IMG/VR virus record: IMGVR_UViG_3300047321_000238
Location: 62,001-126,000 of that record
Length of the DNA: 64,000 bases
Reading direction: 5' to 3' (one strand)
Part shown: positions 5,260 to 63,873 of the stretch, piece by piece
Layout: every line of letters begins with the position of its first letter
How positions within the stretch are numbered: position 1 is the first letter of the stretch
Program-made: the position numbers and the translations under genes
Notes under the pieces: model-generated
The model's database searches: none
Told to the model about the DNA's origin: nothing
What the model saw: the letters and a program-made list of their open reading frames with translations, nothing else

Positions 5260-5320
5260 GATTAAAATAGCTATTGGTAATCTACTTAATCTAATATATA
5301 AATAATAAAATCCTATATAT

Positions 5321-5355
5321 AAATAAGCTTCGCAGTTTTAATCATGCGTATTATT
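5321..5355. repeat. Third full copy of the AAATAAGCTTCGCAGTTTTAATCATGCGTATTATT element
   Basis: Near-identical to 1873-1906. Confidence 0.8.
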
Positions 5356-5800
5356 TGTATATAGGTTGGACCCTTAATCCATGAAAAGACGATTGGAGCA
5401 TCTACGTATGTTGGGTATCGCAAAGTTTTCATTAATCCATCCCGTTCCTTATAGTATTATGCAGGATTTAGAATTCATTCTTGCATTCCTACTATAGGGA
5501 ATACCCCTAAAAAGACTCAATCTTGCAAGAAAAAGAAAACCAACTTTCAGAATTACTATTATTGTGGAATAGATTATAATATATGCAAATATATTTTTAA
5601 GCTATCTTAACACAATTATGGTTAATTTTTTTCAGAGTTGGACACTAGTGTAATATATATAACACCAATTAACAGCTAACGCAGTTATGGAAATAACACT
5701 TTGATATAGCTTAAAGTATATTTGCTGTTAATACACAATTCGTACTTACGAGTGCCGTAGATGCATATGCGACATAAAGTTAAGATGGATTTGTGCTTCC

Positions 5801-5988
5801 GAGTGCGAGCGTTAGCGAGCACGTATAATTAAATAGCGTTAGCGTCAATTATATAATAGCGTTAGCGTCAAAATTAAATAAAGCGTTAGCGTAGATTTAT
5901 AAATAGATATAATCTTCTATAGTATACCCATACTATTATGAAGTATATCGTCCTACAATTCCATTCAGTGACAGTTATAGCGTTAGCG
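5801..5988. repeat. Five direct repeats of AGCGTTAGCG in AT-rich spacers (iteron-like)
   Basis: Copies at 5808, 5835, 5858, 5882, 5979. Confidence 0.85.
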
Positions 5989-6351
5989 TTTAATAACAAG
6001 CGTAGAATCGATTGTATCATCTATTAAGAGTAGCCATGTGTATACATACTACTAAACTTTAATAGATGCAACGTTGAACACGTAGTGCGAAACACAATAA
6101 AATTATAATAATTTCTCTATACCTACCTAGCAGAATGTAAGTGATGTGGTAGTAGAGGATTAGGAGTCATATCTCCGTTTTAAAGAAATGGCACTCGTAG
6201 ACCTGAACCAAGACGGTTTTGGGACGTAATCGGTGCTTTCACGTTATAATGGATATAAGCGTAGTGAGTAGTCTAAAAACGAACGGATTACTATTACAGT
6301 AGTATATATACTTATATACACACATGGAATAAAAATAAAGGAGATTATAAT

Positions 6352-6599: not shown

Positions 6600-6932
6600 A
6601 TGGAAGTATTAAAGTATATTAATGATACGTTAGTATCATATACATTAGCTGAACTATATGATAATAGAATAGGAATATCTGTAAGTAACGTAGAAGAGTT
6701 TATAGACATAATCGATAAATTAGATGCAACAGGTTTAGTGTATATGCCTACCGATGTAAAACGAGATAAGGTAGCATTGTACAATAGAGGTACAAGTAAA
6801 AATAGTTGTATATTAATAGAAAGAAGACCTGACCTAGGTAAATGTGAATATATATTAAGGTATTATTCAGAAGACTATGTAACTATGTATGCTGGCACTA
6901 TAAAGAAGTATAGTGAGGTGACATTAGTATAA
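6600..6932 (+). CDS. tag-array paralog 1 (MEVLKYIN)
   Basis: Shared N-terminal peptide and YT(L/I)..L...I.I.V..EEF core. Confidence 0.85.
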   Translation: MEVLKYINDTLVSYTLAELYDNRIGISVSNVEEFIDIIDKLDATGLVYMPTDVKRDKVALYNRGTSKNSCILIERRPDLGKCEYILRYYSEDYVTMYAGTIKKYSEVTLV

Positions 6933-7252
6933 TGGAGTTGTTAAAGCATATTAATGATATGGCAAATACGTATACTATAAGTAAGCTGTTAAATACAAAC
7001 GCTATAGTACAGTGTGATAGTAAAGAAGAGTTTATGCAGTTAATATATAAGATAAACTGTACATCGTATCTACATACAACCCTTAGTGGTAGTACATGGG
7101 ATATTTATAATAACCAGGATAGATATAATGGAAGTATGGCAATATACTTTAACAGTAGACATCTAGAGTTTTGTTACGTAGATTATTATAAAACATATAG
7201 ACGTAAGAACCCTAAGTATAAGTATAGTGAAGTAAATATAGTAACTATATAG
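6932..7252 (+). CDS. tag-array paralog 2 (MELLKHIN)
   Basis: TAATG overlap; family core and FC..DYY motif. Confidence 0.85.
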   Translation: MELLKHINDMANTYTISKLLNTNAIVQCDSKEEFMQLIYKINCTSYLHTTLSGSTWDIYNNQDRYNGSMAIYFNSRHLEFCYVDYYKTYRRKNPKYKYSEVNIVTI

Positions 7253-7260
7253 AGTATGCA

Positions 7261-7293
7261 GAGTTTTTCTTCTGCACGCGAACATATGTTTAT
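7261..7293 (+). promoter_or_regulatory. Repeated intergenic motif TTTTTC-T(C/T)TGCACGC-(G/A)AACATATGTT-TAT, copy 1
   Basis: Matches 9793-9826 and partly 9444-9462; contains the palindrome AACATATGTT. Confidence 0.6.
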
Positions 7294-7319
7294 TATATGA
7301 AAGGAGATTAAGCAAGTCT

Positions 7320-7667
7320 ATGAGTATAGAGTTATTAGATTATATAAATAAGAATAGTAAAAAGTCTTATACTATACAACAGATGATAGATGATAAGATA
7401 GCAATTCAAGTATGTAGTAGAGAAGAGTTGCAAAATCTTATAGATATAAGAAGTAGTCATGGTTGTATTGGGTGTACAGTAGAATCATGGGATACGTATG
7501 TAATAAAATATAACAAAAAGAGATATAATGGTCGGATGTGTTTAGCATTTCAAAGACCAGGATTTCTTGATTTCTGTGATACAGGATATTATCTAAACCA
7601 AGGATATACTATAGTGCCTTATACAAGTCTAGTTATAATAGATAGTGATAAGGTGGTGTTAATATAA
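7320..7667 (+). CDS. tag-array paralog 3 (MSIELLDYIN)
   Basis: KIAIQVCSREE, FCDTGYYLNQGY. Confidence 0.85.
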   Translation: MSIELLDYINKNSKKSYTIQQMIDDKIAIQVCSREELQNLIDIRSSHGCIGCTVESWDTYVIKYNKKRYNGRMCLAFQRPGFLDFCDTGYYLNQGYTIVPYTSLVIIDSDKVVLI

Positions 7668-7984
7668 TGGAAGTATTAAGTCATATTAATAATATACAAA
7701 GGTTTAGTATGTCAGACTTTATAGATAAAGGATATGTAATAAAGGTATGTCATAGAGCTGGACTAGAAGCTATAGTAGAGTATTTAGATAATCATGGTGT
7801 AGAAGTTAACGATGATATACGTGGAGCTGATGATAGAAGATGTGAATACTTATGTTTAAGACTAGGAGGATGGACAGATAAGAGTGGTAACATAACAGGT
7901 TATTGTGCATGGCAAGCAAACTATGAACACTATAAGAGTAGAGGATGTACTATGTACGATTATGATGAGGTGGTGTTAGTATAA
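7667..7984 (+). CDS. tag-array paralog 4 (MEVLSHIN)
   Basis: TAATG overlap; family pattern. Confidence 0.85.
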   Translation: MEVLSHINNIQRFSMSDFIDKGYVIKVCHRAGLEAIVEYLDNHGVEVNDDIRGADDRRCEYLCLRLGGWTDKSGNITGYCAWQANYEHYKSRGCTMYDYDEVVLV

Positions 7985-7985
7985 T

Positions 7986-8318
7986 ATGGAGTTATTAAAA
8001 GAAGTAAATGAATTTAATAAGTATAGAATACGAGATATAATACGTAATAGCATGGATATATTAATACATACACCTAAGGAAGAAGACTTAATTATATTAT
8101 ATAACAAGTTAATTGAATTAGGATATATAATAAGTGATCACATGTTGCATATATATAGTTCGTATAAAGAAGAGACATGTATAAGATTCTATAAGTATAC
8201 TAGTCAAAGTAGTGTAGCAAATGAATTAGGAATGAGTTATGCTGATAAACCATGGTATATCGAGAATGAAAAACAAATGAAGATAATAAACATGGGGGAC
8301 ATAGTATGGAAGTATTAA
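7986..8318 (+). CDS. tag-array paralog 5 (MELLKEVN)
   Basis: IHTPKEE, KEETCI, YADKPWY. Confidence 0.85.
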   Translation: MELLKEVNEFNKYRIRDIIRNSMDILIHTPKEEDLIILYNKLIELGYIISDHMLHIYSSYKEETCIRFYKYTSQSSVANELGMSYADKPWYIENEKQMKIINMGDIVWKY

Positions 8319-8620
8319 GATATATTAATGATGTAGTATATGGTATGTATACTATAGAAGAATTAATAAATAAGAAGATAGCAGTACATGTACCTACAAA
8401 AGAAAAATTTAATAATATGCAAGATATGCTTATATTATTATATGGCAATAAAATAAAAACATTATCTTATGATAAAATAGGTAGGTATGCAAAGTTAATG
8501 TGTATTAACGTAGAGAGTAGTACAGGACCATATCAATATGACATGGTTATAAGTTATTGCGATAAACAATGGTATCTGGATAATGGTTATACTGTTATAA
8601 GTATGGATAGTATAAGATGA
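8306..8620 (+). CDS. tag-array paralog 6 (MEVLRYIN)
   Basis: KIAVHVPTKE, YCDKQWYLDNGY. Confidence 0.85.
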   Translation: MEVLRYINDVVYGMYTIEELINKKIAVHVPTKEKFNNMQDMLILLYGNKIKTLSYDKIGRYAKLMCINVESSTGPYQYDMVISYCDKQWYLDNGYTVISMDSIR

Positions 8621-8808
8621 GTAAAGAATTATTAAGTTATATAATAGTAATGTTTATTACGGGTTTCTTAATAGGAATAATGGGAAACCTAATGGGCTCA
8701 CCAAGTAAAAATAATATATTTATAGATGCTATATTATTTGGAATATTCATGATATTTTATCCATTTTATATTATTATATATGAAATAAGAAACAATAGAA
8801 AGAAGTGA
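8617..8808 (+). CDS. small membrane protein with tag-like start (MSKELLSYI)
   Basis: Two hydrophobic segments; ATGA overlap. Confidence 0.7.
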   Translation: MSKELLSYIIVMFITGFLIGIMGNLMGSPSKNNIFIDAILFGIFMIFYPFYIIIYEIRNNRKK

Positions 8809-8815
8809 AAATATC

Positions 8816-9127
8816 ATGGAGATATTAAGTTATATAAATGATATAGCCTTTAACACGTATACTATAAAACAGTTAATAGGTAATAAGATAGCAGTGCATG
8901 TACCCACGCTTAAAGAATTCAAAGATATGCAAGAGATAGTTAAAGCACACAATAAAGATGTATATATAATGGATGATAGTATATATAATTGTATGAAAGA
9001 GGAGACATGTCTTAATATAGAAAATTGGAGCGGAGATTGTATATGTGATATACAAATAGAATATTGCGATAAACAATGGTATATAGATAATGGTTATAAG
9101 ATTATAAGTATGGAGGATATAAGATGA
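8816..9127 (+). CDS. tag-array paralog 7 (MEILSYIN)
   Basis: KIAVHVPTLKE, KEETCL, YCDKQWYIDNGY. Confidence 0.85.
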   Translation: MEILSYINDIAFNTYTIKQLIGNKIAVHVPTLKEFKDMQEIVKAHNKDVYIMDDSIYNCMKEETCLNIENWSGDCICDIQIEYCDKQWYIDNGYKIISMEDIR

Positions 9128-9438
9128 GTGTAGAACTATTAAATTATATAAACAAAGAAATGTTTAAGATTATAATAACAGTAGATGAACTAGTTAATAA
9201 TGGAGTAGTTATACATGTAAATAATAGAGAAGAACAGGAAGAGTTTTTCACCGCAGTATGTAATGTGGATATACATGTACCTGCTGATACTAGAATACAT
9301 TCATATAAAACACATGGAGATAAGCTGTTACACTTAATACAAAATCATAATGGTTTATATAGAGTAATGTATGGCACTAAGATGTCATTAGGTAAGTATA
9401 GAGTATTAGAGTATAAAGATATAAGTATAGTTAAGTAA
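9124..9438 (+). CDS. tag-array paralog 8 (MSVELLNYIN)
   Basis: VVIHVNNREE core. Confidence 0.85.
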   Translation: MSVELLNYINKEMFKIIITVDELVNNGVVIHVNNREEQEEFFTAVCNVDIHVPADTRIHSYKTHGDKLLHLIQNHNGLYRVMYGTKMSLGKYRVLEYKDISIVK

Positions 9439-9443
9439 ACAAC

Positions 9444-9462
9444 GGTTTTTTCTTTGCACGCG
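9444..9462 (+). promoter_or_regulatory. TTTGCACGC motif, copy 2 (truncated)
   Basis: GGTTTTTTCTTTGCACGCG. Confidence 0.5.
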
Positions 9463-9483
9463 TAATAAGAAGGAGTGAACGTA

Positions 9484-9783
9484 GTGATTGAGTTATTAAA
9501 GTATATTAACAATGACTTCGTAAAAGAAGAAACTGTTGAAGCTATTAATAAAAGAAATAAGTTATTCAACGAACATGTATTAACATTAAGAAAAGATATA
9601 GAAGAACTTAATGATAGAATAGAACTAGATAATAAAAGAAAAAGTAAAGCATTATTTATTATAGTATCTTCTACTATAGTTAATCTTATAATACAATTAA
9701 TATCTATAAGTCTTTATATTAAAGTATCATCAGCTATAGTATATGTATTGCTATTACAATTAGTTATATGGAAGAAAGATTAA
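9484..9783 (+). CDS. coiled-coil + transmembrane protein with tag (MIELLKYIN)
   Basis: GTG start at 9484, 9 nt after AAGGAG; unrelated body. Confidence 0.75.
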   Translation: MIELLKYINNDFVKEETVEAINKRNKLFNEHVLTLRKDIEELNDRIELDNKRKSKALFIIVSSTIVNLIIQLISISLYIKVSSAIVYVLLLQLVIWKKD

Positions 9784-9792
9784 GTAGAAAAA

Positions 9793-9826
9793 GGTTTTTC
9801 TTTGCACGCAAACATATGTTTATATT
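9793..9826 (+). promoter_or_regulatory. TTTGCACGC-AAACATATGTT motif, copy 3
   Basis: Matches 7261-7293. Confidence 0.6.
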
Positions 9827-9844
9827 AAGAAGGAGTGATAAGTC

Positions 9845-10312
9845 ATGGAAGAATTGTTAGAATTATTGGGAGATAGAAGAATACCTAAGTATGAGGAGAC
9901 GACAGCATTTAATAACATACCTATTACAGATGAGTATGTAAAACATCAAATTATAAGTGAAGATAAAAAAGAAGTGAAGGCAATATTAAAAAGAATAAGG
10001 ACTAGCGGATTTCATTGCAATAGTACGAACAATTTAATAACTGTCATATTAGAGAACAAAGCTCTCTTAGATAAAATTAGTTTAGTAAAGGATGGTAGTT
10101 ATTTAAATACAAAGATACTTTTAAAACGTAATAGCAAACCATATATACTTATATATAGTGGAATTAAAACTGTATTAGGTGATAAAGTATTCGATTTGAA
10201 ATTTGATTATAGTGAAATAGAAATGTTAAATCTTATTACTGATAGAAGTGAAAGAGTATATATTAATATAAGAGATTATATAGATAGAGATAGATATAGA
10301 TGGAACTATTAA
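9845..10312 (+). CDS. hypothetical protein (MEELLELL)
   Basis: AAGGAGTG SD. Confidence 0.8.
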   Translation: MEELLELLGDRRIPKYEETTAFNNIPITDEYVKHQIISEDKKEVKAILKRIRTSGFHCNSTNNLITVILENKALLDKISLVKDGSYLNTKILLKRNSKPYILIYSGIKTVLGDKVFDLKFDYSEIEMLNLITDRSERVYINIRDYIDRDRYRWNY

Positions 10313-10629
10313 ATTATATAAACAACGTGTTAAATAAGTATAACTTTGATTATCTATATGATAATAAAGTAGCAATAAGAGTACCAACAGCAGACGATTA
10401 TTATATATTAGAGAAGATGATAAATGATTATTGTAAGAGAAAATATATATCAGTAAGATTATTACCATTCTTAAGGAATAGTAATTATATAAAAATACAT
10501 GCTACATGTATTAATATAGGACCAGAAACTATAACAAATCATTATGATATAAATATAAACTATTGTGATCAAGAATATTATATACAACAAGGATATACTA
10601 TAGTTAATATATCTGACTGTTGTATATAG
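10300..10629 (+). CDS. tag-array paralog 9 (MELLNYIN)
   Basis: KVAIRVPT, ATCI, YCDQEYYIQQGY. Confidence 0.85.
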   Translation: MELLNYINNVLNKYNFDYLYDNKVAIRVPTADDYYILEKMINDYCKRKYISVRLLPFLRNSNYIKIHATCINIGPETITNHYDININYCDQEYYIQQGYTIVNISDCCI

Positions 10630-10641
10630 GAGAGTAGTATA

Positions 10642-10854
10642 ATGGAACTATTAAAGTATATAAACAATTATAAACACAAGATGATGTGTGGCAGTACTAG
10701 TAGACAAAAAAGAGGATGTGACAATATCGATATAAAAGCATGTTGTATAACATGTAATAAGAGAGACGATTGTTACTTTGAATGTGCAGGCTCACAGACA
10801 GAAAGACATTATCGAAATATAGATGAGCCATGTGATAAAGGAGTAGTACTATGA
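10642..10854 (+). CDS. Cys-rich protein with tag (MELLKYIN)
   Basis: CCxxCx5Cx3C pattern. Confidence 0.8.
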   Translation: MELLKYINNYKHKMMCGSTSRQKRGCDNIDIKACCITCNKRDDCYFECAGSQTERHYRNIDEPCDKGVVL

Positions 10855-10982
10855 TGGAATTATTACAAGCAGTTAATAAAATGAATATGTATACTTTAAC
10901 AGATGTAGTCTATGCATTTACAAGAGGAAAGAAAATAGCAATAGAAATAAAAGATATTATAATAAAGAAGGAGTATTTATGA
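10851..10982 (+). CDS. truncated tag-array paralog, 43 aa (not in ORF track)
   Basis: MMELLQAVNKMNMYTLTDVVYAFTRGKKIAIEIKD...; AAGGAG SD; overlaps both neighbours. Confidence 0.65.
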   Translation: MMELLQAVNKMNMYTLTDVVYAFTRGKKIAIEIKDIIIKKEYL

Positions 10983-11347
10983 CCGAACTATTAAGTATGA
11001 TTAATAATTATTCTATAGGATATAGTTTAAACGATTTATATAATAAACATATAATAATTAGAATATTAAACAAAAAAGATTTATGTGATTTCATTGAAAT
11101 TTCTAATTATAATAATACAGTTAGAACCTTTAATGCAGAAAAAGTATGGAATAAATATGTAGAACCACTTAATAATTGTAATAAAATTATATGCATAGAA
11201 TTAGAAGTAAATGACGAAGAAGATAATTATGATTTTATGTTTACATTTGGAAGTATAAGTTATTATACTGATCCAATACTACATCGTGAAAATAAATATG
11301 AAATAGTAGATTATCATAAAGATATAATAAATAATTGGGAGATATAA
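10979..11347 (+). CDS. tag-array paralog 10 (MTELLSMIN)
   Basis: Family pattern. Confidence 0.85.
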   Translation: MTELLSMINNYSIGYSLNDLYNKHIIIRILNKKDLCDFIEISNYNNTVRTFNAEKVWNKYVEPLNNCNKIICIELEVNDEEDNYDFMFTFGSISYYTDPILHRENKYEIVDYHKDIINNWEI

Positions 11348-11350
11348 TTT

Positions 11351-11698
11351 ATGATTGAATTATTAAGTTTTGTTAATGATGAAACAAACATAAAAGAAAC
11401 AGTATATGTAGACGACATAGCTGGAAACAAAATAACATTAGAATTTTCTACTAAAGAAAGTTATATGATATTTTGTAAAGCTATGGACGAAACATATGAT
11501 ACTTATACTGAATATACAAAGAATGATGCATGGGAAGACTATATAGAAGATGAAGAGCAGAACAAAGATTTTAAAGGTAAGCTTGGTTTGAATCTACATG
11601 ATAATAAAAAAGGTTGGAACTATTGTGAAATTGATTGGTATAAAGATAATGGCTATAAAGTATATAAGTACGATGATATTATATTAAAGTACAATTAA
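11351..11698 (+). CDS. tag-array paralog 11 (MIELLSFVN)
   Basis: YCEIDWYKDNGY. Confidence 0.85.
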   Translation: MIELLSFVNDETNIKETVYVDDIAGNKITLEFSTKESYMIFCKAMDETYDTYTEYTKNDAWEDYIEDEEQNKDFKGKLGLNLHDNKKGWNYCEIDWYKDNGYKVYKYDDIILKYN

Positions 11699-11715
11699 AA
11701 AGGAAATGAAGAATA

Positions 11716-12042
11716 ATGAGGGAATTATTAAAACATATACAAGAGAATCAATATAAAATAGAAGATATTATAAAAGATAATGTAGCGTTGTATATTGATA
11801 ATAGAAAAGATTTAGATACTATAATAGAAGTAGCAAATAGACATAATATATTTATTGGGCCATTTATAAGAACATCATTAACGGATTCATATTGTAAAAA
11901 AGGAATCTTTATAAAGATAATACACATTAAAGAAAATGATTATTATGTGAAAGGATATAAATATAGATTAGGATGGAATTTCGATGATAATGATAAATCA
12001 CTCTTAACTGTATATAGTAGAGAGGATTATATATTAGTATAA
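11716..12042 (+). CDS. tag-array paralog 12 (MRELLKHIQ)
   Basis: YKIEDII..VALYI core. Confidence 0.8.
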   Translation: MRELLKHIQENQYKIEDIIKDNVALYIDNRKDLDTIIEVANRHNIFIGPFIRTSLTDSYCKKGIFIKIIHIKENDYYVKGYKYRLGWNFDDNDKSLLTVYSREDYILV

Positions 12043-12054
12043 GGAGAGATTAAT

Positions 12055-12366
12055 ATGGCCGAGCTATTAAAATATGTAAATGAAAATATTAAAGACAAAT
12101 ATACCGTAAAGATGATTATAGACAAAAGATTAGTAGTTAATGTAAAAACTAAAGAAGCGTTTAATGATATGCAGGATAAAATATGGGATTATAATCATAA
12201 AGTATGCTTTATAGATAATGATGTTTATTCCATACACAAATCACAAACATGCATTAAAGTAGAAAGAATAAATACATCGGAATATGATTTAAATATAGAA
12301 TTTTGTGACAAACAATGGTATATAGATGAAGGCTATCAAATAATTGATATAGGAAAAGTAATATAA
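12055..12366 (+). CDS. tag-array paralog 13 (MAELLKYVN)
   Basis: QTCI, FCDKQWYIDEGY. Confidence 0.85.
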   Translation: MAELLKYVNENIKDKYTVKMIIDKRLVVNVKTKEAFNDMQDKIWDYNHKVCFIDNDVYSIHKSQTCIKVERINTSEYDLNIEFCDKQWYIDEGYQIIDIGKVI

Positions 12367-12545
12367 TGGAGCTATTAAAATACATTAATACTCACATATA
12401 TAAAAGAAAATGTAAGTATGGATGTAGATATAAAGAAGATGAAGATGAACATATATGTTGTCATGATTGTGATCGTATAGATATATGTGACGCAGTCTGT
12501 TTCTCTTTAGATGAAAAGGAATGTGACTTCACTATTAAGGAATAA
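12366..12545 (+). CDS. Cys-rich protein with tag, 59 aa (not in ORF track)
   Basis: MELLKYINTHIYKRKCKYGC...CCHDCDRIDICDAVC...; TAATG overlap. Confidence 0.75.
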   Translation: MELLKYINTHIYKRKCKYGCRYKEDEDEHICCHDCDRIDICDAVCFSLDEKECDFTIKE

Positions 12546-12559
12546 GAAGGAGATGTATT

Positions 12560-13084
12560 ATGAGCGTTAAAGATGATTTACTACAAGAATTAAATAAAGT
12601 TTTAGCATTACAAGAAGAAATGGCTAAAAGAGTAGAAATAGTAAAAACTAAAATATTAGAGGAAGAAAATAAGAAAGTATTTTGGACACCAACTCATGGG
12701 CAACAATATTACTATATAAATAACGAAGTGATCGTTCTAGGCTGTCCTTATGACAATAACTGGCGTAGTGATAAAGTAAGAATAAAAAATCTTAACTATT
12801 ACGAAACAGAAAAAAAATGTGAAAGAGCCATATTTGAACAAATTTTAAACAGAAAATTGAATAAATTTGCTCATGAAAACAATGAAGAAGAAATTGATTG
12901 GAGTAATCCAGTGCAAGCTAAATATATGATAATATATGACAATGATTCAAAAAAGCTTGAAGCTAGTATCTATAGTCATATTCAATCTTTTGGACAAGTA
13001 TATTTCACATCAAAAGAAATAGCAGAACGAGCAATTAAAAATTTTAAAGATGATTTAATAAGATCTTTTACTACTAAGGAGTAA
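12560..13084 (+). CDS. hypothetical phage protein
   Basis: AAGGAG SD; IDW.N..Q.KY and VYFTSKEIAERAI motifs typical of Firmicute phage proteins. Confidence 0.8.
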   Translation: MSVKDDLLQELNKVLALQEEMAKRVEIVKTKILEEENKKVFWTPTHGQQYYYINNEVIVLGCPYDNNWRSDKVRIKNLNYYETEKKCERAIFEQILNRKLNKFAHENNEEEIDWSNPVQAKYMIIYDNDSKKLEASIYSHIQSFGQVYFTSKEIAERAIKNFKDDLIRSFTTKE

Positions 13085-13090
13085 TAATCT

Positions 13091-13717
13091 ATGGAAATAT
13101 TAAAACATATAAATGAATTAAAAACTAAAGGAATAGCATATATATGTTACGATACTGGAGGTAGTGGAGAAGATGGTAGAAGATTATACGCACGCAATAT
13201 ATATGATTATTATAAAGAATTATACTTCGATGTAGTAGTATTAAGCTATAGTACTCACGCAAAATATAATAATATAGATAATATTCTACCACAAGGAACT
13301 GGTGGCACTTATATGTCATCGCCATTAACTTTATTAATGCAAGATGCAGAGAGAGTTAAAAACGATAAAGAACTATGTCATTATGCTTACAACTTCAATC
13401 CTAATAATATAATTGTATTAGTAGGGGATGGAGATAACTGGAGTGAAGATAATGATAGATTCTGTAGATGTATAGAAGAGATAACAAAAACTAATAGTGT
13501 TGTATATCATGAAATATTAGGAGGTTCACATCATGATAATACAATGTACAAGCGGTTAAAAGCTAAAAGATATTCAAAGGTTCATCTCTATAAAGTAGAG
13601 AAAGAACAAGATATATTTGGCAATAAGAAAAAACAAATAAAAGGTGCCGATTATTATACTGCTATAACTGAAGATTTAGTAGATAGTATATTTGATTGGG
13701 ATGTATCATATGAATAA
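13091..13717 (+). CDS. vWA-like protein resembling the YhbH/YeaH (DUF444) C-terminus, with tag (MEILKHIN)
   Basis: DTGGS, GGTYMSS, DGDNWSEDNDR, YHEI. Confidence 0.75.
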   Translation: MEILKHINELKTKGIAYICYDTGGSGEDGRRLYARNIYDYYKELYFDVVVLSYSTHAKYNNIDNILPQGTGGTYMSSPLTLLMQDAERVKNDKELCHYAYNFNPNNIIVLVGDGDNWSEDNDRFCRCIEEITKTNSVVYHEILGGSHHDNTMYKRLKAKRYSKVHLYKVEKEQDIFGNKKKQIKGADYYTAITEDLVDSIFDWDVSYE

Positions 13718-14054
13718 TAAAGAATAAATAATATAAAGGAGATGATTGCCATGAGTATATTACCGATGATATTAGTATTAGTAATTGGTTATATTTTAGG
13801 CAAAAATAACGCACACTTAAAATAAGAAAGGAGTATAAAGATTAAATGTCATGAAACTCAATTTGAAAACAGACTTAATAAAAGCATTTATATTAATAGG
13901 GATTTTTACCGCTATATATTTAGTATGGTGGTTTTTTGAATTGTTTATTAATTATAAAATAATGGAGATGGTAGTAAATGGAGGTTTAACTTATTGTATA
14001 TACTACATATTAAGAAGTAATAAGTAGGAATAAGCAAGAAAGGAGTAAATTATT

Positions 14055-14246
14055 ATGGCTGATGCAACTTTAATAAATACACCACCAACAGGAACACCAC
14101 CGCCAGGACCAACAGGTATGCCACCAAATCCTGCACAAGGACTAGGAATGGGATCATGTTTAAATTCTCATATGAATGGTTATTTTATAAATTCATTTGG
14201 CAGTGGACATAAAACTACTGCAAAGAAAAAGAAGAAGAAAAAATAA
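14055..14246 (+). CDS. Pro-rich small protein with poly-Lys tail
   Basis: AAGGAG SD; TPPTGTPPPGP...KKKKKK. Confidence 0.65.
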   Translation: MADATLINTPPTGTPPPGPTGMPPNPAQGLGMGSCLNSHMNGYFINSFGSGHKTTAKKKKKKK

Positions 14247-14258
14247 GGAGGATTTTAT

Positions 14259-14405
14259 ATGGATTCAAATATGTACAATTACTTATATGGAATTGGAGAT
14301 AGAACCTCCTTATCTAGTCAAAATAAGAAAAGTACTAAAAAATCTACTAAGAAAACGGCAGTTAAAAAAACAACAGCTAAGAAGACTGCAACTAAAAAGA
14401 AATAA
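14259..14405 (+). CDS. Lys-rich histone-H1-like small protein, 48 aa (not in ORF track)
   Basis: AAGGAGG SD; KKSTKKSTKKTAVKKTTAKKTATKKK. Confidence 0.7.
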   Translation: MDSNMYNYLYGIGDRTSLSSQNKKSTKKSTKKTAVKKTTAKKTATKKK

Positions 14406-14414
14406 CATATCGTG

Positions 14415-14452
14415 AAAGAATGTATTTGTTTAATATAGATACATTCTTTTTT
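14415..14452 (+). terminator. Rho-independent terminator
   Basis: AAAGAATGTAT/ATACATTCTTT followed by T run. Confidence 0.75.
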
Positions 14453-14591
14453 GTTATATACAAATAATAAGGAGAAATGAATATGTATATAAGCACAGGA
14501 GCAAGTATTGCAATAATTATTTTTTTATCTACATCACTTATTTGTAATGTAGTGTCATTAATTATTCAAATAAACCAACATAATAAAGGAA

Positions 14592-14867
14592 ATGAAAATT
14601 ATGATAAGAAAGAATGAGAAGAAAAAAGCTTTAAAAGTTAATTTAATCTGTATAACATATTGTATTGTAATGGGAATACCTATAGGTATTTTACTTGAAC
14701 ATGTTAACAATGAAAATATAGCAACTGCAATATTTATGTTTTTTAGTATTAGTGTAGTATTATTATCTATTTATTTAGACAATAAAGGCAAAACTACTAT
14801 CTATAAAAGTATTCCTTATAATGAAGAGTATGAAAAATTTATGAAACAAATAGAAATGATACATTAA
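14592..14867 (+). CDS. membrane protein
   Basis: Two hydrophobic segments. Confidence 0.7.
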   Translation: MKIMIRKNEKKKALKVNLICITYCIVMGIPIGILLEHVNNENIATAIFMFFSISVVLLSIYLDNKGKTTIYKSIPYNEEYEKFMKQIEMIH

Positions 14868-14868
14868 T

Positions 14869-15132
14869 ATGGAGATATTAAATCATATCAATAATGCTAT
14901 GAGTATAAACTTTCATGAAGATTCATTGCTTATAGCTAATATATTAGTAAACTACACGCTTGAATATCAAGATTATAGTGAGAATAAAAAAGCTGCAGAC
15001 TATATGGTAAAGGGAGTAAGTTATGTTATGGGAGATAGTCATTGGTCAATCAAAAATGTATATAACTTAGCAGAAACCGTTAAAGGATTGTATGTAGCAG
15101 GAGTTCCACTACATCAATATAGGAAGGGATAA
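14869..15132 (+). CDS. hypothetical protein with tag (MEILNHIN)
   Basis: Tag on an unrelated body. Confidence 0.75.
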   Translation: MEILNHINNAMSINFHEDSLLIANILVNYTLEYQDYSENKKAADYMVKGVSYVMGDSHWSIKNVYNLAETVKGLYVAGVPLHQYRKG

Positions 15133-15136
15133 TTGT

Positions 15137-15634
15137 ATGGAATATCATGTATTTGGAAAAGTAGTTCAAAGAAATTATGTATTAGAAGTAGATAACTTCT
15201 TTTTGTGTGACACAGTTAAATTACCAATAACAGTAGAGCAATATTTAAAAAAGAATTTAGCATGGGAGAAATATAATGAATCAAATGCATATATAGGCGG
15301 CAGCCATCCTAATAACAAATTCTTAAATGATTGCATATTAATACACAAAGATACTATTATTGAGCATAAAGAATTATTTGTAATAGATGTATGCAGAACG
15401 TTTATGGATGGAGATATATACGTATATAAGAATAAAGAATACAAAGCAAAATATAAATACAATGGCGATTTGAATCGACATGAATTATATATAGACTATA
15501 TATTAAAGTTACGTGAGAATGACTTGCAAAAAGCATCTAGCGAAATAATATTAAACTATATTAAGGAATACAATAAATCAATTAAGAATAAAAAAGAAAC
15601 TAAAAAAAAGAAACCCTGGTATAAAATATTTTGA
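15137..15634 (+). CDS. hypothetical protein
   Basis: ORF in operon. Confidence 0.75.
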   Translation: MEYHVFGKVVQRNYVLEVDNFFLCDTVKLPITVEQYLKKNLAWEKYNESNAYIGGSHPNNKFLNDCILIHKDTIIEHKELFVIDVCRTFMDGDIYVYKNKEYKAKYKYNGDLNRHELYIDYILKLRENDLQKASSEIILNYIKEYNKSIKNKKETKKKKPWYKIF

Positions 15635-15795
15635 AAATAACGAACAAGGAAAGGAGATGACAATATGTTAGCAATAATTGGAGCATTTTTATTAAAAGCA
15701 ATAGGTGTATTTAATATGGTATGTTCAACAGTTTCAAACTTAAGAATGATAGCATGCATAGGATACTAATATAAATAAAAAGAGAGGCAATATAT

Positions 15796-16002
15796 ATGAA
15801 AGTAACAACAGGATTAAAACCAATTATAAAAGCATTAAAACCAGTAACAAAAAATGTTACAAAAAAGGTGACAACAACTGTAACACAAATAGCTGGAACA
15901 GTTAATAAGAAATCAATAGATAGAGTAAAAGCACAAGTATCTTTAGTAGTAGCTCAAAAAGCAGTCGAAATTGCGAAAGTTGCATTAAAAGGATTTCTAT
16001 AA
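15796..16002 (+). CDS. small basic hypothetical protein
   Basis: GAGAGG SD; K/T/V-rich. Confidence 0.7.
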   Translation: MKVTTGLKPIIKALKPVTKNVTKKVTTTVTQIAGTVNKKSIDRVKAQVSLVVAQKAVEIAKVALKGFL

Positions 16003-16025
16003 AATAATCTAAGGGGTGATTAAAT

Positions 16026-16370
16026 ATGTTAAAAAGATATTATCAAAATAAAGAAAAAAGTTTCAGAATACAAAGTGAAGAAATACATGCATTTTTAGAA
16101 GATTATCGATATATATGTAAAGGAATAAGAGAAGGCAAAAAGATTTCAAAAGCAATGGAGGAACGTATGGATAGTACATTTAAAACCATAGCTTGTAAAA
16201 TAAGAAATGATGCAAAGATTAAAAACGTTATGTCGTTAATACCTATGTACAATGATATGGTATTAGTAGAAGTTTATGATTATGAATTACCAGATCCAAA
16301 TTGGAATGCATTTTGCGAACCAAAATTAGATGAAGATAAAGAGTTATGGTATTTTGAAATAGAAGAGTAA
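16026..16370 (+). CDS. hypothetical protein
   Basis: GGGGTG SD. Confidence 0.75.
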   Translation: MLKRYYQNKEKSFRIQSEEIHAFLEDYRYICKGIREGKKISKAMEERMDSTFKTIACKIRNDAKIKNVMSLIPMYNDMVLVEVYDYELPDPNWNAFCEPKLDEDKELWYFEIEE

Positions 16371-16392
16371 AAATAATCTTAGGGGGATTATT

Positions 16393-16632
16393 ATGGAATA
16401 CAGACGCAAAAGAGACGAAGAAACAAAGAAAATGCTTAAGAGTATAATACGTGAGATGGCTACAGTTGGAATTGTATTTATCTTATTGGGACTAATAGGT
16501 TTTGTAGTGTTTCATTACACTGGTAAATATCTAATACATCCTGCAGTATATTTTGTAGCAGTAGCTGGAGGTACTTTTACATCATTAACAGCTGGTATTA
16601 TGTATTTAAATTTAGTAGTAAGGAAAAGGTAA
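16393..16632 (+). CDS. membrane protein
   Basis: Two TM segments. Confidence 0.7.
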   Translation: MEYRRKRDEETKKMLKSIIREMATVGIVFILLGLIGFVVFHYTGKYLIHPAVYFVAVAGGTFTSLTAGIMYLNLVVRKR

Positions 16633-16637
16633 ATAAT

Positions 16638-16832
16638 ATGAAGAAGATACAAGCTTTTAATCAAATGATAAATGGCAATAGAATTAGACACGAATATTTC
16701 GGATCATCAGAGTATTTGTATATGGAGTATGGTATAATATATTCCGAAGAAGGATACAACTTCGAAGACGCATGGGATAATAGAAATGGCCCAGAATGGG
16801 AAGAAGGTTGGAGCTTATATGGAGCTGCTTAG
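16638..16832 (+). CDS. hypothetical protein
   Basis: ORF in operon. Confidence 0.7.
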   Translation: MKKIQAFNQMINGNRIRHEYFGSSEYLYMEYGIIYSEEGYNFEDAWDNRNGPEWEEGWSLYGAA

Positions 16833-17061
16833 TTTTATTAATAAATTAAGTGAAAGATATACTGAATATAGTATGGTATGTTCAAGAATAGATAATCTTG
16901 CTGACAATAAATACTATCCATTATTATTAGTTAGTGATAAAGATAATATAAAAGAAGCAATTAAAAAATGGTTTAATATTTATTGTTATGTAGATGAAAC
17001 TCAAATACTACAAGCTATAGATATTTATCTTGAAGTAAGAAAAGAAATAACAGGAGATTAA
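16819..17061 (+). CDS. hypothetical protein with tag (MELLSFIN)
   Basis: Start re-assigned to ATG 16819 after GGAG. Confidence 0.75.
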   Translation: MELLSFINKLSERYTEYSMVCSRIDNLADNKYYPLLLVSDKDNIKEAIKKWFNIYCYVDETQILQAIDIYLEVRKEITGD

Positions 17062-17551: not shown

Positions 17552-17827
17552 ATGAAGACAGTATTAAAAATCGTTGCTGTATGTACTTTAGGTATGTTTG
17601 ATAGTTTTTTAGCACGAACTTATGAAGCTATACAAACCTTAATTAACAGTCGTTCAGCTGTACAAGCTTTAAAGAACTCCAATGAAGGATATGTAGTAAG
17701 TCAAGTATTTCAATTTGATGGAACTGTATTCTATGGAGTAATGATATTAATAAATGTATTAATCCTTTATTTGATGTTTAGAACATCATTTAAAGTTAAT
17801 AAAGATAAAAATGAAGAAACAAAATAA
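17552..17827 (+). CDS. membrane protein upstream of SPFH gene
   Basis: GGGAGG SD; hydrophobic termini. Confidence 0.75.
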   Translation: MKTVLKIVAVCTLGMFDSFLARTYEAIQTLINSRSAVQALKNSNEGYVVSQVFQFDGTVFYGVMILINVLILYLMFRTSFKVNKDKNEETK

Positions 17828-17852
17828 TAAATATGATGGGGGAAAAATAATT

Positions 17853-20604: not shown

Positions 20605-20605
20605 G

Positions 20606-38321: not shown

Positions 38322-38624
38322 ATGAATAAAAAGAAAAAATTTAGAGAAAACATAATAGTAAGAGCACAGGATTGTGGCAAACATATAACAGAGACAGGCG
38401 ATACTTTAAGAACAACAGCGAAATTATTTGGTTGTTCAAAATCAACAGTACACAAAGACATAAATGATAGATTATTATTCATCAATAAAAGATTGTATAA
38501 TAAAGCTAGAAAGGTACTAGAAAAGAATTTAGCTGAGAGAAATTTAAGAGGAGGATTAGCTACTAAGAATAAATATGCTAATTCAGGCAAAGACAATAAC
38601 ATATTAGATAAAAGCAAAAGCTAA
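38322..38624 (+). CDS. spoIIID: SpoIIID-like sporulation transcription regulator
   Basis: TLRTTAKLFGCSKSTVHKDI.DRL...L.KN..ER..RGG.AT..KY. Confidence 0.9.
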   Translation: MNKKKKFRENIIVRAQDCGKHITETGDTLRTTAKLFGCSKSTVHKDINDRLLFINKRLYNKARKVLEKNLAERNLRGGLATKNKYANSGKDNNILDKSKS

Positions 38625-38950
38625 TGGAACTATTGGCATACGTAAGGAAAATTTGGTTAAGAAAACATTCTAAAGGAAAGTGGGAGACTAAAGATGGATC
38701 AGAACAGTATGTTGAAGAACTTACTGATGACCATCTAATGAGGATCCCACATTTCATTTGGAAACAATATCGTAGCTATTCAAAAACAATGATTTCAGAT
38801 GTGATCAAAGAAGAAATAGAAGAAAGAAATATGTATATTGACTATGATAACGAATGTAAAGTAAGACGTAATCATCCAGCTCTTAAAGCAATTTCCTCTA
38901 AATCTAATGTCGCTAAAAAGAAAACACATAATAAAATATTTTATAAATAA
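38624..38950 (+). CDS. hypothetical protein with tag-like start (MELLAYVR)
   Basis: TAATG overlap with spoIIID. Confidence 0.75.
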   Translation: MELLAYVRKIWLRKHSKGKWETKDGSEQYVEELTDDHLMRIPHFIWKQYRSYSKTMISDVIKEEIEERNMYIDYDNECKVRRNHPALKAISSKSNVAKKKTHNKIFYK

Positions 38951-49162: not shown

Positions 49163-49450
49163 ATGGATGTATTAAAGCATATAAATCGAATTAGTAGTAA
49201 AAAAATTGCTGTAGTAATGTTCAGTCGTGGTACTATGTGTTATTTTAAAACTACATTAGATGATCTAGAAGAAAATGATATGGTCTTAGTTCACACTAAG
49301 CAGGGATATGAAATAGCACATTTTTATGAATATACAACCTATGAATTTGATGTTGAAAAAGCTATTCATTGGATAGTACAAAAAATAGATACAACAGAAT
49401 ATGAAGAAAATAAAAAATTATTTGAGGAGGATAACAATGTTAATAACTAG
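49163..49450 (+). CDS. hypothetical protein with tag (MDVLKHIN)
   Basis: Tag on an unrelated body. Confidence 0.7.
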   Translation: MDVLKHINRISSKKIAVVMFSRGTMCYFKTTLDDLEENDMVLVHTKQGYEIAHFYEYTTYEFDVEKAIHWIVQKIDTTEYEENKKLFEEDNNVNN

Positions 49451-54570: not shown

Positions 54571-54575
54571 TATAT

Positions 54576-61928: not shown

Positions 61929-62001
61929 AATATTATTCTTTTATAGAATAAATATAAAATAAATGATAGAATATAAACATATAAAACAAGGAGGAAACAT
62001 A

Positions 62002-62601
62002 ATGAATACAAGCAATTTAGTGCCAATGGTTATAGAAAGAGAAGGTAACTCTGAAAGGGCAATGGATTTAATCAGTAGAATGATGAAAGACAGGATTATA
62101 TTTCTTAATGGAGAAGTAAATGATATGTCAGCAAATCTATTAGTATCACAACTAATATTTTTAGAAGCAGATAGCCCAAACCAACCAATAACAATGTATA
62201 TCAACAGTCCAGGTGGTTCAGTTACTGCAGGACTTGCAATCAAAAATACAATGCATTACGTAAAAAGTCCAGTATGGACAGTAGGAATGGGAATGTGTGC
62301 CTCTATGGGAGCATTCTTACTAGCGTCAGGGGAGCCAGGACATAGATCGGTATTGCCAGATACAACGGTAATGATACATCAAGTATTAGGTGGTGCAGAA
62401 GGACAAGTTACCGATATGAAATTAAGAGTAGAATTTGCAGAAAGTCTTAAGATTAAATTAAATAAATACCTTTCACAATATACACAAGGAAAAGTAGACT
62501 ATGATACAATGGTAGCTCTGTGTGAAAGAGATAATTTTTTAACAGCTGAAAAAGCGTTAGAATTAGGATTAATAGATGAAATAGTAGAAAAACAAGTATA
62601 A
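62002..62601 (+). CDS. clpP: ATP-dependent Clp protease proteolytic subunit
   Basis: YINSPGGSVTAG, CASMGAFLL, MIHQ, RDNFL; start after AAGGAGG. Confidence 0.95.
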   Translation: MNTSNLVPMVIEREGNSERAMDLISRMMKDRIIFLNGEVNDMSANLLVSQLIFLEADSPNQPITMYINSPGGSVTAGLAIKNTMHYVKSPVWTVGMGMCASMGAFLLASGEPGHRSVLPDTTVMIHQVLGGAEGQVTDMKLRVEFAESLKIKLNKYLSQYTQGKVDYDTMVALCERDNFLTAEKALELGLIDEIVEKQV

Positions 62602-62616
62602 GAGGAGGCATAACTA

Positions 62617-63873
62617 ATGAGTAATGAAAAGAAAATTTGTGGATTTTGTGGCAAAACAGAAGGAGCAATGATAAGAGGAGTTTCTAGTTTTATATGCTTC
62701 GATTGTTTAGGGATTTGTAATGAAAAAATCAAAGGCGTAAAATCTAAAGGAAAACAATTAAAGCTTATAGCTAATTTAAAGCCATCAGCTATTAAAAATA
62801 TGTTAAACGAGTACGTAATTGATCAAGATATTGCTAAGGAAAAATTAGCAGTAGCTATTTATAATCATTATAAGATGAATAAGTACTTTGATGAACATGA
62901 TGGCAATCCACCAATCGAGATTGAAAAATCTAATGTAATTTTACTAGGTCCAACAGGTTCAGGTAAAACACATATAGTTAAGACATTAGCAAAAGAATTA
63001 GGGATTCCACTTGGAATTGCAGATGCTACTGGATTAACTGAAGCAGGATACGTTGGAGAAGACGTTGAAAATTGTATAAGAAAGTTAATTGAAAATGCAG
63101 ATGGAGACGTAGAAAAAGCAGCTAGAGGAATAATCTATATAGATGAAATCGATAAGATTTGCCGTAAAGGTGAAAATGTCTCTGTTTCAAGAGACGTATC
63201 TGGAGAAGGAGTTCAACAAGCTCTATTAAAATTAGTTGAAGGTACGATTGCAGAAGTTCCACCAAAGGGAGGAAGAAAGCATCCAGATCAAGAATGTATT
63301 AAGATTGATACATCAAGAATACTATTTATAGTAGGAGGATCTTTTGAAGGTATAGAAAAAACTATAGCTAAAAGAAAACAAGGTAAATCTACTATGGGAT
63401 TTGGTTCTAAAATAGTAGATACAAAGAAAGCTGAATTTAATGAATACATCCACGATGTAGTTGTTGATGATATAAAGAAGTTTGGAATGTTACCTGAATT
63501 CTTAGGAAGATTCCCTGTTATAGCTACACTGAATGAATTGAATGAAGAAGCTTTAATTAAAATATTAACCGAGCCAAAAAATTCTTTAGTTAAGCAATAT
63601 ACAGAACTATTAAAGATGGATTCAATCGATCTTATTATTGAACCTGGAGCACTTGCAGCAATAGCACATAAAGCTATTGAAAGAAAAACTGGTGCAAGAA
63701 GTTTAAGAGCAATAGTAGATGAAAAATTACTAGACTACATGTACAAGTTGCCAGATGATGAGTTGGCAGACACGATTACTATAACAAAAGAAGTAATTGA
63801 AGAAAATGCAGAAGCTGTTATAACTCATAGAGAACCAACACCAGAAGAAGAAATTGAACAAATAGCAGAATAA
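62617..63873 (+). CDS. clpX: ATP-dependent Clp protease ATPase subunit
   Basis: CGFCG..C..C zinc domain, GPTGSGKT, YIDEIDK, RDVSGEGVQQ, GGRKHP, MGF loop, GARSLR. Confidence 0.95.
   Translation: MSNEKKICGFCGKTEGAMIRGVSSFICFDCLGICNEKIKGVKSKGKQLKLIANLKPSAIKNMLNEYVIDQDIAKEKLAVAIYNHYKMNKYFDEHDGNPPIEIEKSNVILLGPTGSGKTHIVKTLAKELGIPLGIADATGLTEAGYVGEDVENCIRKLIENADGDVEKAARGIIYIDEIDKICRKGENVSVSRDVSGEGVQQALLKLVEGTIAEVPPKGGRKHPDQECIKIDTSRILFIVGGSFEGIEKTIAKRKQGKSTMGFGSKIVDTKKAEFNEYIHDVVVDDIKKFGMLPEFLGRFPVIATLNELNEEALIKILTEPKNSLVKQYTELLKMDSIDLIIEPGALAAIAHKAIERKTGARSLRAIVDEKLLDYMYKLPDDELADTITITKEVIEENAEAVITHREPTPEEEIEQIAE

Follow-up and report, generated by a model that had tools for sequence, protein, structure and literature searches.

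We found that at least 32 small and mostly unrelated proteins of an uncultivated jumbo phage begin with the same eight-residue peptide (M-E-L-L-K-Y-I-N), which is predicted to be a helix and is kept by selection at the protein level. The peptide therefore looks like a portable address label, although its destination remains unresolved. The analysed DNA, referred to here as the window, is a stretch of 64,000 nucleotides (positions 62,001 to 126,000) of the 247,883-bp contig IMGVR_UViG_3300047321_000238. The features are listed in Table 1.

In order to clarify whether the shared N-terminus is real, we searched all frames of the window for the strict motif E[LVI]Lx[YHF][IV]N. The motif occurred 17 times, and every hit was on the + strand and lay 0-2 residues after a start codon; there were no internal hits and none in minus frames. 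Codon shuffles gave a mean of 0.06 hits and a maximum of 1, and the expectation from residue frequencies was 0.0006 at N-termini. A looser form of the motif gave 25 N-terminal cases in the window, against 2 internal + strand matches and 2 minus-frame matches. Seven more tagged genes were found at three other places in the same contig, so that the tag reaches beyond positions 6600-17061 and beyond the window. Among the 32 proteins, Glu was present in 31, the invariant Leu in 32, and Asn in 26, and the offset from Met was 0 in 22 proteins, 1 in 7, and 2 in 3. One carrier (labelled L150) may be an exception, because its motif lies nine residues inside the protein if the upstream ATG, which has the better ribosome-binding site, is used. 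The information content dropped sharply after the eighth residue.

The observation made in the preliminary description is thus confirmed, and its list of carriers (13 full paralogs, one truncated paralog, and a set of unrelated bodies) was correct. Three of the cases are weak, however, namely the genes at 8617, 9845, and 38624. The gene at 9475 most likely starts at the GTG at 9484, as had been proposed.

Table 1. Tagged genes and the candidate partner genes in the window (L091, L095, and L097 are sequences of related phages)
Position	Strand	Product	N-terminus	Remarks
6600..6932	+	Tagged paralog (110 aa)	MEVLKYIN	
6932..7252	+	Tagged paralog (106 aa)	MELLKHIN	Orthologues P0021 and P0018 occur in other phages
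7320..7667	+	Tagged paralog (115 aa)	MSIELLDYIN	
7667..7984	+	Tagged paralog (105 aa)	MEVLSHIN	
7986..8318	+	Tagged paralog (110 aa)	MELLKEVN	
8306..8620	+	Tagged paralog (104 aa)	MEVLRYIN	
8617..8808	+	Membrane protein (63 aa)	MSKELLSYII	Weak tag that runs straight into a transmembrane segment; possibly a chance match
8816..9127	+	Tagged paralog (103 aa)	MEILSYIN	
9124..9438	+	Tagged paralog (104 aa)	MSVELLNYIN	
9484..9783	+	99-aa protein, GTG start	M-I-ELLKYIN	Tag, then a charged helical stretch, then C-terminal transmembrane segments (tail-anchored)
9845..10312	+	155-aa protein	MEELLELLG	Doubtful, degenerate tag
10300..10629	+	Tagged paralog (109 aa)	MELLNYIN	
10642..10854	+	Tagged Cys-rich mini-protein (70 aa, 8 Cys)	MELLKYIN	
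10851..10982	+	Truncated paralog (43 aa)	MMELLQAVN	
10979..11347	+	Tagged paralog (122 aa)	MTELLSMIN	
11351..11698	+	Tagged paralog (115 aa)	MIELLSFVN	
11716..12042	+	Tagged paralog (108 aa)	MRELLKHIQ	
12055..12366	+	Tagged paralog (103 aa)	MAELLKYVN	Modelled with AlphaFold2
12366..12545	+	Tagged Cys-rich mini-protein (59 aa, 8 Cys)	MELLKYIN	Tagged orthologues in L091, L095, and L097
13091..13717	+	Tag joined to the C-terminal half of a DUF444/YhbH-like domain (208 aa)	MEILKHIN	Pfam E 6.7e-9; tagged orthologues in L091 and L095
14869..15132	+	Tagged 87-aa protein	MEILNHIN	Tagged orthologue at L095:14151
16819..17061	+	Tagged 80-aa protein	MELLSFIN	Start at the internal ATG of ORF 16786; tagged orthologues in L095 and L097
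28605..28946	+	Tagged 113-aa protein	MELLKYIN	Away from the array
38624..38950	+	Basic 108-aa protein	MELLAYVR	Weaker tag
49163..49450	+	95-aa protein	MDVLKHIN	Body homologous to Clostridium phage phiCT453A gp13 and phrog_20007, both of which begin where the tag ends
61963..63873	+	ClpP (61963-62601) and ClpX with an N-terminal Cys-rich domain (62617-63873)		Candidate partner only; no link to the tag is shown

Then we examined whether the DNA or the peptide is conserved. The preliminary description had claimed that the codons of the tag vary synonymously, and this variation is real: the fraction of same-residue pairs with the same codon was 0.60 against 0.58 expected from genome codon usage. 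The exception was the invariant Leu, which is TTA in 23 of 25 genes (65% expected). Upstream of the genes, only a ribosome-binding site was shared. These results indicate that the peptide is conserved, not the DNA. The constraint on the tag was also stronger than that on the bodies, that is, the pairwise identity was 64% in the tag against 21% in the paralog bodies.

We next examined whether the tag can be separated from the proteins that carry it. A profile search with the paralog body found homologues of about 90 aa, including tandem-repeat proteins, that start directly after the tag position. The body of the gene at 49163 aligned to untagged phage families from residue 13 onward, and both the gene at 13091 and the sequence labelled L143 are the tag joined to the C-terminal domain of longer families. 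When the tag was trimmed, the other bodies gave no HMM or BLAST matches to the paralogs or to each other, whereas positive controls scored 1e-24 and 2.5e-15; the tag lies on at least 10 unrelated bodies. Tagged and untagged members of the Cys-rich family coexist in the same genomes, and the tag is therefore not obligatory for that fold.

The tag was also found in related phages from other metagenomes. The related arrays in L090-L097 carry it on paralogs, on Cys-rich mini-proteins, on the DUF444-like protein, and on the 87-aa and 80-aa proteins. Orthologues in L091, L095, and L097 keep 4-7 of the 7 tag residues while their bodies are only 25-46% identical. In contrast, the sister phage IMGVR_UViG_3300045988_148940, which has ClpXP (its ClpX is 59% identical), has no tag in the syntenic small-ORF region and no match to the tag DNA patterns.

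AlphaFold2 models the tag as an amphipathic helix. In the model of the paralog at 12055 (mean pLDDT 96), residues 2-12 form a helix with a pLDDT of about 88, and a helix appeared again at residues 2-10 in the Cys-rich model. The high pLDDT of the helix in the confident paralog model means, however, that it may pack on its own body instead of being free for a partner.

Taken together, these results suggest that the tag M-(0-2 residues)-E-[LIV]-L-x-[YHF]-[IV]-N is a portable docking helix that is maintained by purifying selection on the peptide and gives small accessory proteins of unrelated folds one common recognition handle, so that it most likely docks them all to a single shared partner. 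We place the probability of this reading at about 0.6. Our analysis shows directly that the tag sits at the extreme N-terminus, that its conservation is at the peptide level, that it is separable from the bodies, that it is kept on the same mix of bodies across diverged phages, and that it is predicted to be a helix. On the other hand, we only infer that a single receptor reads it, and that it spread from the paralog family to other genes by exchange of 5' ends inside the small-gene arrays. Binding to a hub, packaging, and degradation are likewise inferences by analogy, and no partner was identified. The interpretation offered in the preliminary description, a portable address label under selection on the peptide, is therefore supported in part: peptide-level selection, portability, and conservation on unrelated bodies hold and make an address label the most economical reading, whereas none of the destinations that it proposed (virion packaging and injection, docking on one hub protein, or a site for the phage ClpXP) is demonstrated. 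The same findings argue against DNA-level repeats and translation-initiation bias, which had been named beforehand as results that would overturn it.

As to the destination, we consider loading into the virion and a link to the phage's own ClpXP to be equally possible, each only tentatively, and another phage or host hub or scaffold to be slightly less likely. If the tag serves virion loading, it would bind the prohead core or scaffold, and diverse small proteins would be packaged and co-injected to act before phage genes are expressed. The genomic signature is the same as that of the T-even internal-protein loci (PMC9026906, PMC3012670): in both cases, tandem arrays of small, diverse ORFs share only a roughly 10-residue N-terminus. 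In addition, the array differs in composition between related phages, and anti-defence genes, namely an Apyc1-like protein and NAD salvage genes, lie nearby. Several features fit this analogy poorly. The carriers are mostly acidic (median pI 5.5; of 31 proteins, 20 are below 6.5 and 5 are above 8.5), whereas the T-even internal proteins are described as basic (PMC9026906). The information content falls below 1.5 bits right after the tag, where the next residue is a mix of D, N, K, E, and T, and thus no conserved position for cleavage by a prohead protease was found, although this result is weak because the protease of this phage and its specificity are unknown. One carrier is a tail-anchored membrane protein. 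Every tagged gene seen lies in a replication, nucleotide-metabolism, or anti-defence neighbourhood, not next to structural genes, and many paralogs are kept as old orthologues instead of turning over quickly.

In the ClpXP-linked reading, the tag would be either an N-terminal degron that gives early proteins a timed lifespan, or a tethering peptide by which the tagged proteins act as interchangeable adaptors that deliver targets to ClpX. The phage encodes ClpP and ClpX in the window, ClpX recognises short terminal degrons including three N-terminal classes (PMC12723719), and the tag needs the extreme N-terminus. The order polar-hydrophobic-hydrophobic-basic-hydrophobic resembles one N-terminal class reportedly described by Flynn et al. 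2003, but the basic position is Lys or Arg in only 15 of 32 tags. Known degrons are unstructured, whereas the tag is predicted to be a confident helix, although a prediction cannot exclude undocking. The invariance of Glu, Leu, and Asn over eight residues is also tighter than in known ClpX N-motifs. ClpXP is present both in the source phage and in the tag-less sister phage, the only two genomes compared in this respect, and the idea is therefore neither helped nor excluded. We also consider a more speculative and unlikely form of this reading, in which the tagged proteins are not cargo but a library of interchangeable substrate receptors. Each variable body would bind a different host or defence protein, and the common helix would plug them all into one phage machine, for which the phage's own ClpXP is the obvious candidate. 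This would be a viral targeted-degradation system that works like F-box families but is built on an 8-residue docking peptide.

It is less likely that the tag is an expression or stability module without a partner, which is kept because it gives efficient early elongation or protects small proteins from host N-terminal quality control. The strictly N-terminal position fits this reading, Glu at position 2 would keep the initiator Met in view of the specificity of methionine aminopeptidase, the TTA bias at the invariant Leu hints at some constraint at the nucleotide or tRNA level, and only ORFs of 210 aa or fewer carry the tag. However, conservation reaches residue 8-9 with invariant polar residues, no large or recognisably highly expressed gene carries the tag (0 of 23 ORFs above 210 aa), the codons are free to vary overall, and most small genes in the same operons do well without it. 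Finally, a functionless relic of repeated 5'-end exchange or duplication is very unlikely, because, although most carriers are packed head-to-tail in arrays where such exchange is easy and the tagged state is clustered on the body tree with a single origin not excluded, there is no DNA-level identity beyond what codon bias explains, the tag is three times more conserved than the bodies and survives in orthologues whose bodies are only 25-46% identical, it also sits on dispersed genes at 28605, 38624, and 49163 and at three other loci, and the present data already point toward a dN/dS for the tag codons well below that of the bodies.

Short, transferable address peptides are rare and useful; the T4 capsid-targeting sequence, for example, became a tool for packaging foreign proteins into virions. 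The present tag marks at least 32 proteins of unknown function as one functional set, and finding its receptor would therefore assign a pathway to a large block of phage dark matter in one step and could provide a new minimal targeting or tethering peptide. The finding also shows that a shared terminal peptide can be used to discover functionally linked orphan genes.

We found no prior description of this tag, but peptides of a comparable kind are known. Two classes do not fit. A RiPP leader precedes short, unfolded, modified cores with a maturase next to them, whereas the carriers here are predicted folded domains of up to 208 aa, the only radical SAM gene (44970-45848) lies about 30 kb away, and the tag has only 8 residues. 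A Sec, Tat, or lipoprotein signal peptide has a basic n-region followed by a hydrophobic h-region of 10 or more residues, whereas the tag starts with Glu, has only 3-4 hydrophobic residues, and the maximum 19-residue hydropathy is 0.25-0.56 in soluble carriers. The capsid-targeting sequences of T-even internal proteins (IPI-III and related proteins) are, like the tag, short N-terminal peptides (10-19 residues; PMC9026906) that are shared by otherwise unrelated small proteins, encoded in many cases by tandem, variable small ORFs of a large myovirus-like phage, and transferable between bodies (PMC9026906, PMC3012670); apart from charge and cleavage, the tag differs in having far more carriers, including a membrane-anchored one. 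ClpX N-terminal degrons and adaptor tethering peptides are likewise short terminal peptides and confer recognition by one machine whatever the attached protein is, as the tag would, but the tag is predicted to be helical and is much more strictly conserved. The encapsulation peptides of bacterial microcompartment enzymes and the cargo-loading peptides of encapsulins are likewise short amphipathic helices at a terminus, joined by a variable linker to unrelated cargo proteins, that dock them to one shell; however, no shell or encapsulin gene was seen in about 100 kb of the genome examined, and the invariant polar residues of the tag (Glu and Asn) are not needed by encapsulation peptides. The F-box and other docking-motif gene families of large viruses and intracellular bacteria resemble the present set, as we read it, in having one conserved docking element at the N-terminus, many variable binding domains, and an expanded multigene family, but the tag has 8 residues instead of a domain of roughly 40 residues, and there is no homology.

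To learn in what kind of genome the tagged genes lie, we first examined the composition and the recognizable genes of the window. The window is AT-rich (about 29% GC) and is coded almost entirely on the + strand. It is positions 62001-126000 of the IMG/VR contig IMGVR_UViG_3300047321_000238. This contig is 247,883 bp long, and its source is therefore an uncultivated jumbo phage. The recognizable genes of the window have functions in replication, nucleotide metabolism and anti-defence. That is, they include RNase H, an Apyc1-like metallo-beta-lactamase, NAD salvage genes, a Nudix protein, a macro-domain protein, ClpP and ClpX, and Rfam finds a cluster of 19 tRNA genes in the region of raised GC content. 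Several of these form a neighbourhood with an anti-defence flavour, to which a PnuC-like membrane protein, judged by eye only, may be added. The phage also appears to encode parts of an ABC transporter, although the ATPase and the binding-protein-like protein among these parts were judged by eye. An SPFH protein lies at 17811-18821. The flanks hold a 1667-aa protein upstream and SSB-like, topoisomerase II and RecA-like genes downstream. Megablast of the array and tblastn of a paralog against 50,697 phage records gave no match, and no phage in the GenBank collection is similar at the DNA level. The coordinates of the features mentioned in this part are listed in the following table.

Coordinates of the features considered in this part; positions are in the window unless another contig is named
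Location	Strand	Feature
5260-6350		Non-coding gap just upstream of the array
5808-5989		Repeated 13-nt unit inside this gap
6600-12366; proteins P0013, P0016, P0020 and P0022		Paralog body, an uncharacterised alpha/beta domain of about 90 aa
6352-6582, 10642-10854, 12366-12545; L095:12277, L097:11970		Cys-rich mini-protein family
14055-14405		Two separate genes at a poly-A tract
19595-20371, 36094-37524, 39682-40059, 43142-43831, 46480-48132, 48668-49120		Neighbourhood with an Apyc1-like metallo-beta-lactamase, a NAPRTase/NAMPT-like enzyme, a YAcAr/SLOG protein, a NadR-like AAA_28 protein, a Nudix protein and a macro-domain protein
20570-21367, 24702-25331, 26656-28224		Possible ABC transporter parts: a permease-like protein (its L097 counterpart hits BPD_transp_1), an ATPase, and a 522-aa binding-protein-like protein with an OmpA-like C-terminus
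53087-57949		Cluster of 19 tRNA genes
L143:3-356 (source contig, outside the window)	-	Tagged 117-aa ORF right after a complete RecJ-like gene
L150:1371-1922 (source contig, outside the window)		Carrier whose tag may lie nine residues inside the protein
L114:990-1712 (source contig, outside the window)		240-aa protein, SIR2-like by eye, immediately preceding the second cluster of tagged ORFs

The gap upstream of the array is a gene-free stretch of 1.1 kb. In this stretch the unit ATAGCGTTAGCGT, or a close variant, occurs four to five times at a spacing of 23-24 nt, and one copy is 97 nt further on. The relatives L095 and L097, which are contigs from other samples, have gaps of 1.1-1.7 kb at the same place. 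The repeated unit could be an operator, an origin or a genome-end feature. A scan of the array for sigma-70 promoters and terminators was at chance level (116 sites against 109 expected) and gave no information on timing.

We next counted the occurrences of the tag. The strict motif E[LVI]Lx[YHF][IV]N occurs 17 times in the window. Every hit is in a + frame and lies 0-2 residues after a start codon, and no hit is internal or in a minus frame. Codon shuffles give a mean of 0.06 hits, and the number expected at N-termini from residue frequencies is 0.0006. A looser motif raises the count to 25 N-terminal cases in the window, against 2 internal + strand matches and 2 minus-frame matches. Thus, the shared N-terminal peptide noticed in the preliminary description is real, and all the genes named there were confirmed, although the cases at 8617, 9845 and 38624 (genes are named by their start positions) are weak. 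Only ORFs of 210 aa or fewer are tagged, that is, 25 of 100, against 0 of 23 larger ORFs (Fisher p = 0.004). A poly-A frameshift was also considered in the window, but the ORFs concerned are two separate genes and the second has its own ribosome-binding site.

In order to clarify whether the peptide or the DNA is conserved, we compared the upstream regions and the codons of the tagged genes. Upstream of the tag the genes share only a ribosome-binding site. Across the seven tag columns, pairs with the same residue use the same codon 60% of the time, whereas genome codon usage predicts 58%. The one exception is the invariant Leu, the third tag codon, which is TTA in 23 of 25 genes (65% expected), while the preceding Leu uses CTA 7 times, against 11% expected. 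This is the only hint of a constraint at the nucleotide or tRNA level. Within the 13 full paralogs, the pairwise identity is 64% in the tag and 21% in the body. These results indicate that the peptide is conserved and not the DNA.

We then examined whether the tag can be separated from the bodies. Word-indexed protein searches with the paralog profile and with gene 49163 returned only the window's own proteins, and only an exhaustive profile search with the paralog alignment found relatives. The latter search found 93 proteins in two classes. The first class is single-domain proteins of about 105 aa from other metagenomes, and these begin with the tag. The second class matches only from profile position 13-16 onward; in other words, these proteins have the same body without the tag, and they include proteins with two or three tandem copies and, in some proteins, a C-terminal membrane anchor. 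Two ankyrin-repeat proteins among the profile hits are spurious repeat matches.

Other bodies gave the same result. The body of gene 49163 matches phrog_20007 and gp13 of Clostridium phage phiCT453A from its residue 13, and both of these start where the tag ends. Gene 13091 is the tag joined to the C-terminal half of a DUF444-like family (profile positions 196-353 of 378). The tagged ORF next to the RecJ-like gene, in the source-contig locus L143, is the tag joined to the C-terminal domain of a 653-aa family, and its body matches only the C-terminal roughly 90 residues of two long PHROG families of unknown function (phrog_22549 and phrog_20698). We considered a split RecJ gene as the origin of this carrier, but the RecJ-like gene is complete and the idea was dropped. 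When the tag was trimmed off, none of the non-paralog carriers matched the paralog-body HMM, whereas positive controls scored 1e-24 and 2.5e-15, and none matched another carrier by BLAST. The Cys-rich mini-proteins form one family (CC-x2-C-x5-C-x3-C), which has both tagged and untagged members in the same genomes.

To determine the distribution of the tag, we scanned all of IMG/VR with two codon-limited DNA patterns. Only the source contig has multiple matches, and every other contig has a single background hit. The scan revealed three further places in the same genome. At the first, five consecutive tagged ORFs lie between a SIR2-like gene (locus L114) and the HU and NrdD genes; HU, anaerobic ribonucleotide reductase (NrdD) and its activase follow the cluster, which suggests an anaerobic host. 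At the second, one ORF lies between an AAA ATPase and a UvrD-like helicase, and at the third, one ORF follows the RecJ-like gene. The census is therefore 32 carriers. In one carrier outside the window, at locus L150, the upstream ATG has the better ribosome-binding site and the ATG before the tag has none. If the upstream ATG is the start, this is the only carrier whose tag is not at the extreme N-terminus. Pattern scans of bacterial genomes and JGI metagenome contigs gave only single background matches and no arrays, and so no clue to the host emerged.

Contigs from other samples were found through the tagged homologues, namely L090-L094, L095/L096 (ENA, 136.7 kb) and L097 (ENA, 258.8 kb). 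L095 and L097 share gene order with the window. The complete relatives are ENA ERZ15232962 NODE_1 and ERZ18242522 NODE_22. All these contigs hold arrays in which the tag again sits on paralogs and on Cys-rich mini-proteins and, where present, also on the DUF444-like protein and on the 87-aa and 80-aa proteins. The orthologues keep 4-7 of the 7 tag residues while their bodies are 25-46% identical. On a poorly resolved tree of the body domain, the tagged state is clustered (6 changes against 15.6 in shuffles). Window paralogs pair with orthologues from other phages, so the array is old. In contrast, a more distant sister phage (IMGVR_UViG_3300045988_148940) has ClpXP and a small-ORF region at the same place, but no tag. 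Its anchor protein is 44% identical and its ClpX 59% identical to those of the window, and the tag-trimmed carriers have no homologue in the loci available from it. IMGVR_UViG_3300045988_128707 is another sister phage without the tag.

The structure of the tag was considered from AlphaFold2 models. A paralog was modelled with a mean pLDDT of 96. In this model the tag is a helix at residues 2-12 with a pLDDT of about 88, followed by an alpha/beta body, and the body has no significant PDB match and only weak matches to uncharacterised viral proteins. The model of a Cys-rich mini-protein had low confidence (pLDDT 60), so only its secondary structure was used; it also begins with a helix, at residues 2-10. 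From our reading of the consensus on a helical wheel, residues L3, L4 and I7 form one hydrophobic face with Tyr at its edge, and the nearly invariant Glu and Asn lie on the polar side. The carriers are 59-208 aa long and mostly acidic (median pI 5.5), and one is tail-anchored in the membrane. No conserved position follows the tag. A RiPP leader and a secretion signal were also considered as identities of the tag and were dropped.

Taken together, five features point to a recognition handle read by one common partner: an eight-residue helix with invariant polar and hydrophobic residues, a fixed position at the extreme N-terminus, attachment to unrelated folds, absence from the homologues of those folds elsewhere, and retention across diverged phages while the bodies drift. 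These features come from the analysis itself, although the helix is a prediction, whereas the recognition and the common partner are inferred from them. We give this general reading a probability of about 0.6. It corresponds to the address label proposed in the preliminary description, and that proposal is partly supported, since the label is the likely reading but no partner was identified.

As to the partner, we regard two candidates as equally tentative. Loading into the virion has the best precedent, the capsid-targeting sequences of the T-even phages (PMC9026906, PMC3012670). However, it fits poorly with the acidic carriers, the missing cleavage site, the membrane-anchored carrier and the gene neighbourhoods. 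A link to the phage ClpXP is attractive because the machine is encoded here and ClpX reads short terminal peptides (PMC12723719). However, the sister phage without the tag also has ClpXP, and the tag is predicted to be structured. Another hub seems slightly less likely than either of these. A pure expression or stability role is unlikely and a functionless relic of 5'-end exchange still more so, and both fit the conservation pattern poorly.

Full-text searches of the literature for four variants of the tag returned nothing, and topical searches found no description of such a system. The paralog body has no Pfam family, and PHROGs gave only two weak single-member hits for the 14 paralogs. The concept of a short N-terminal targeting peptide on diverse phage proteins is already known from T4. 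We therefore think that the tag is a variant of this concept, whose destination would still have to be assigned, and that it is distinguished by its unusual breadth, with at least 32 carriers and at least 10 unrelated bodies.
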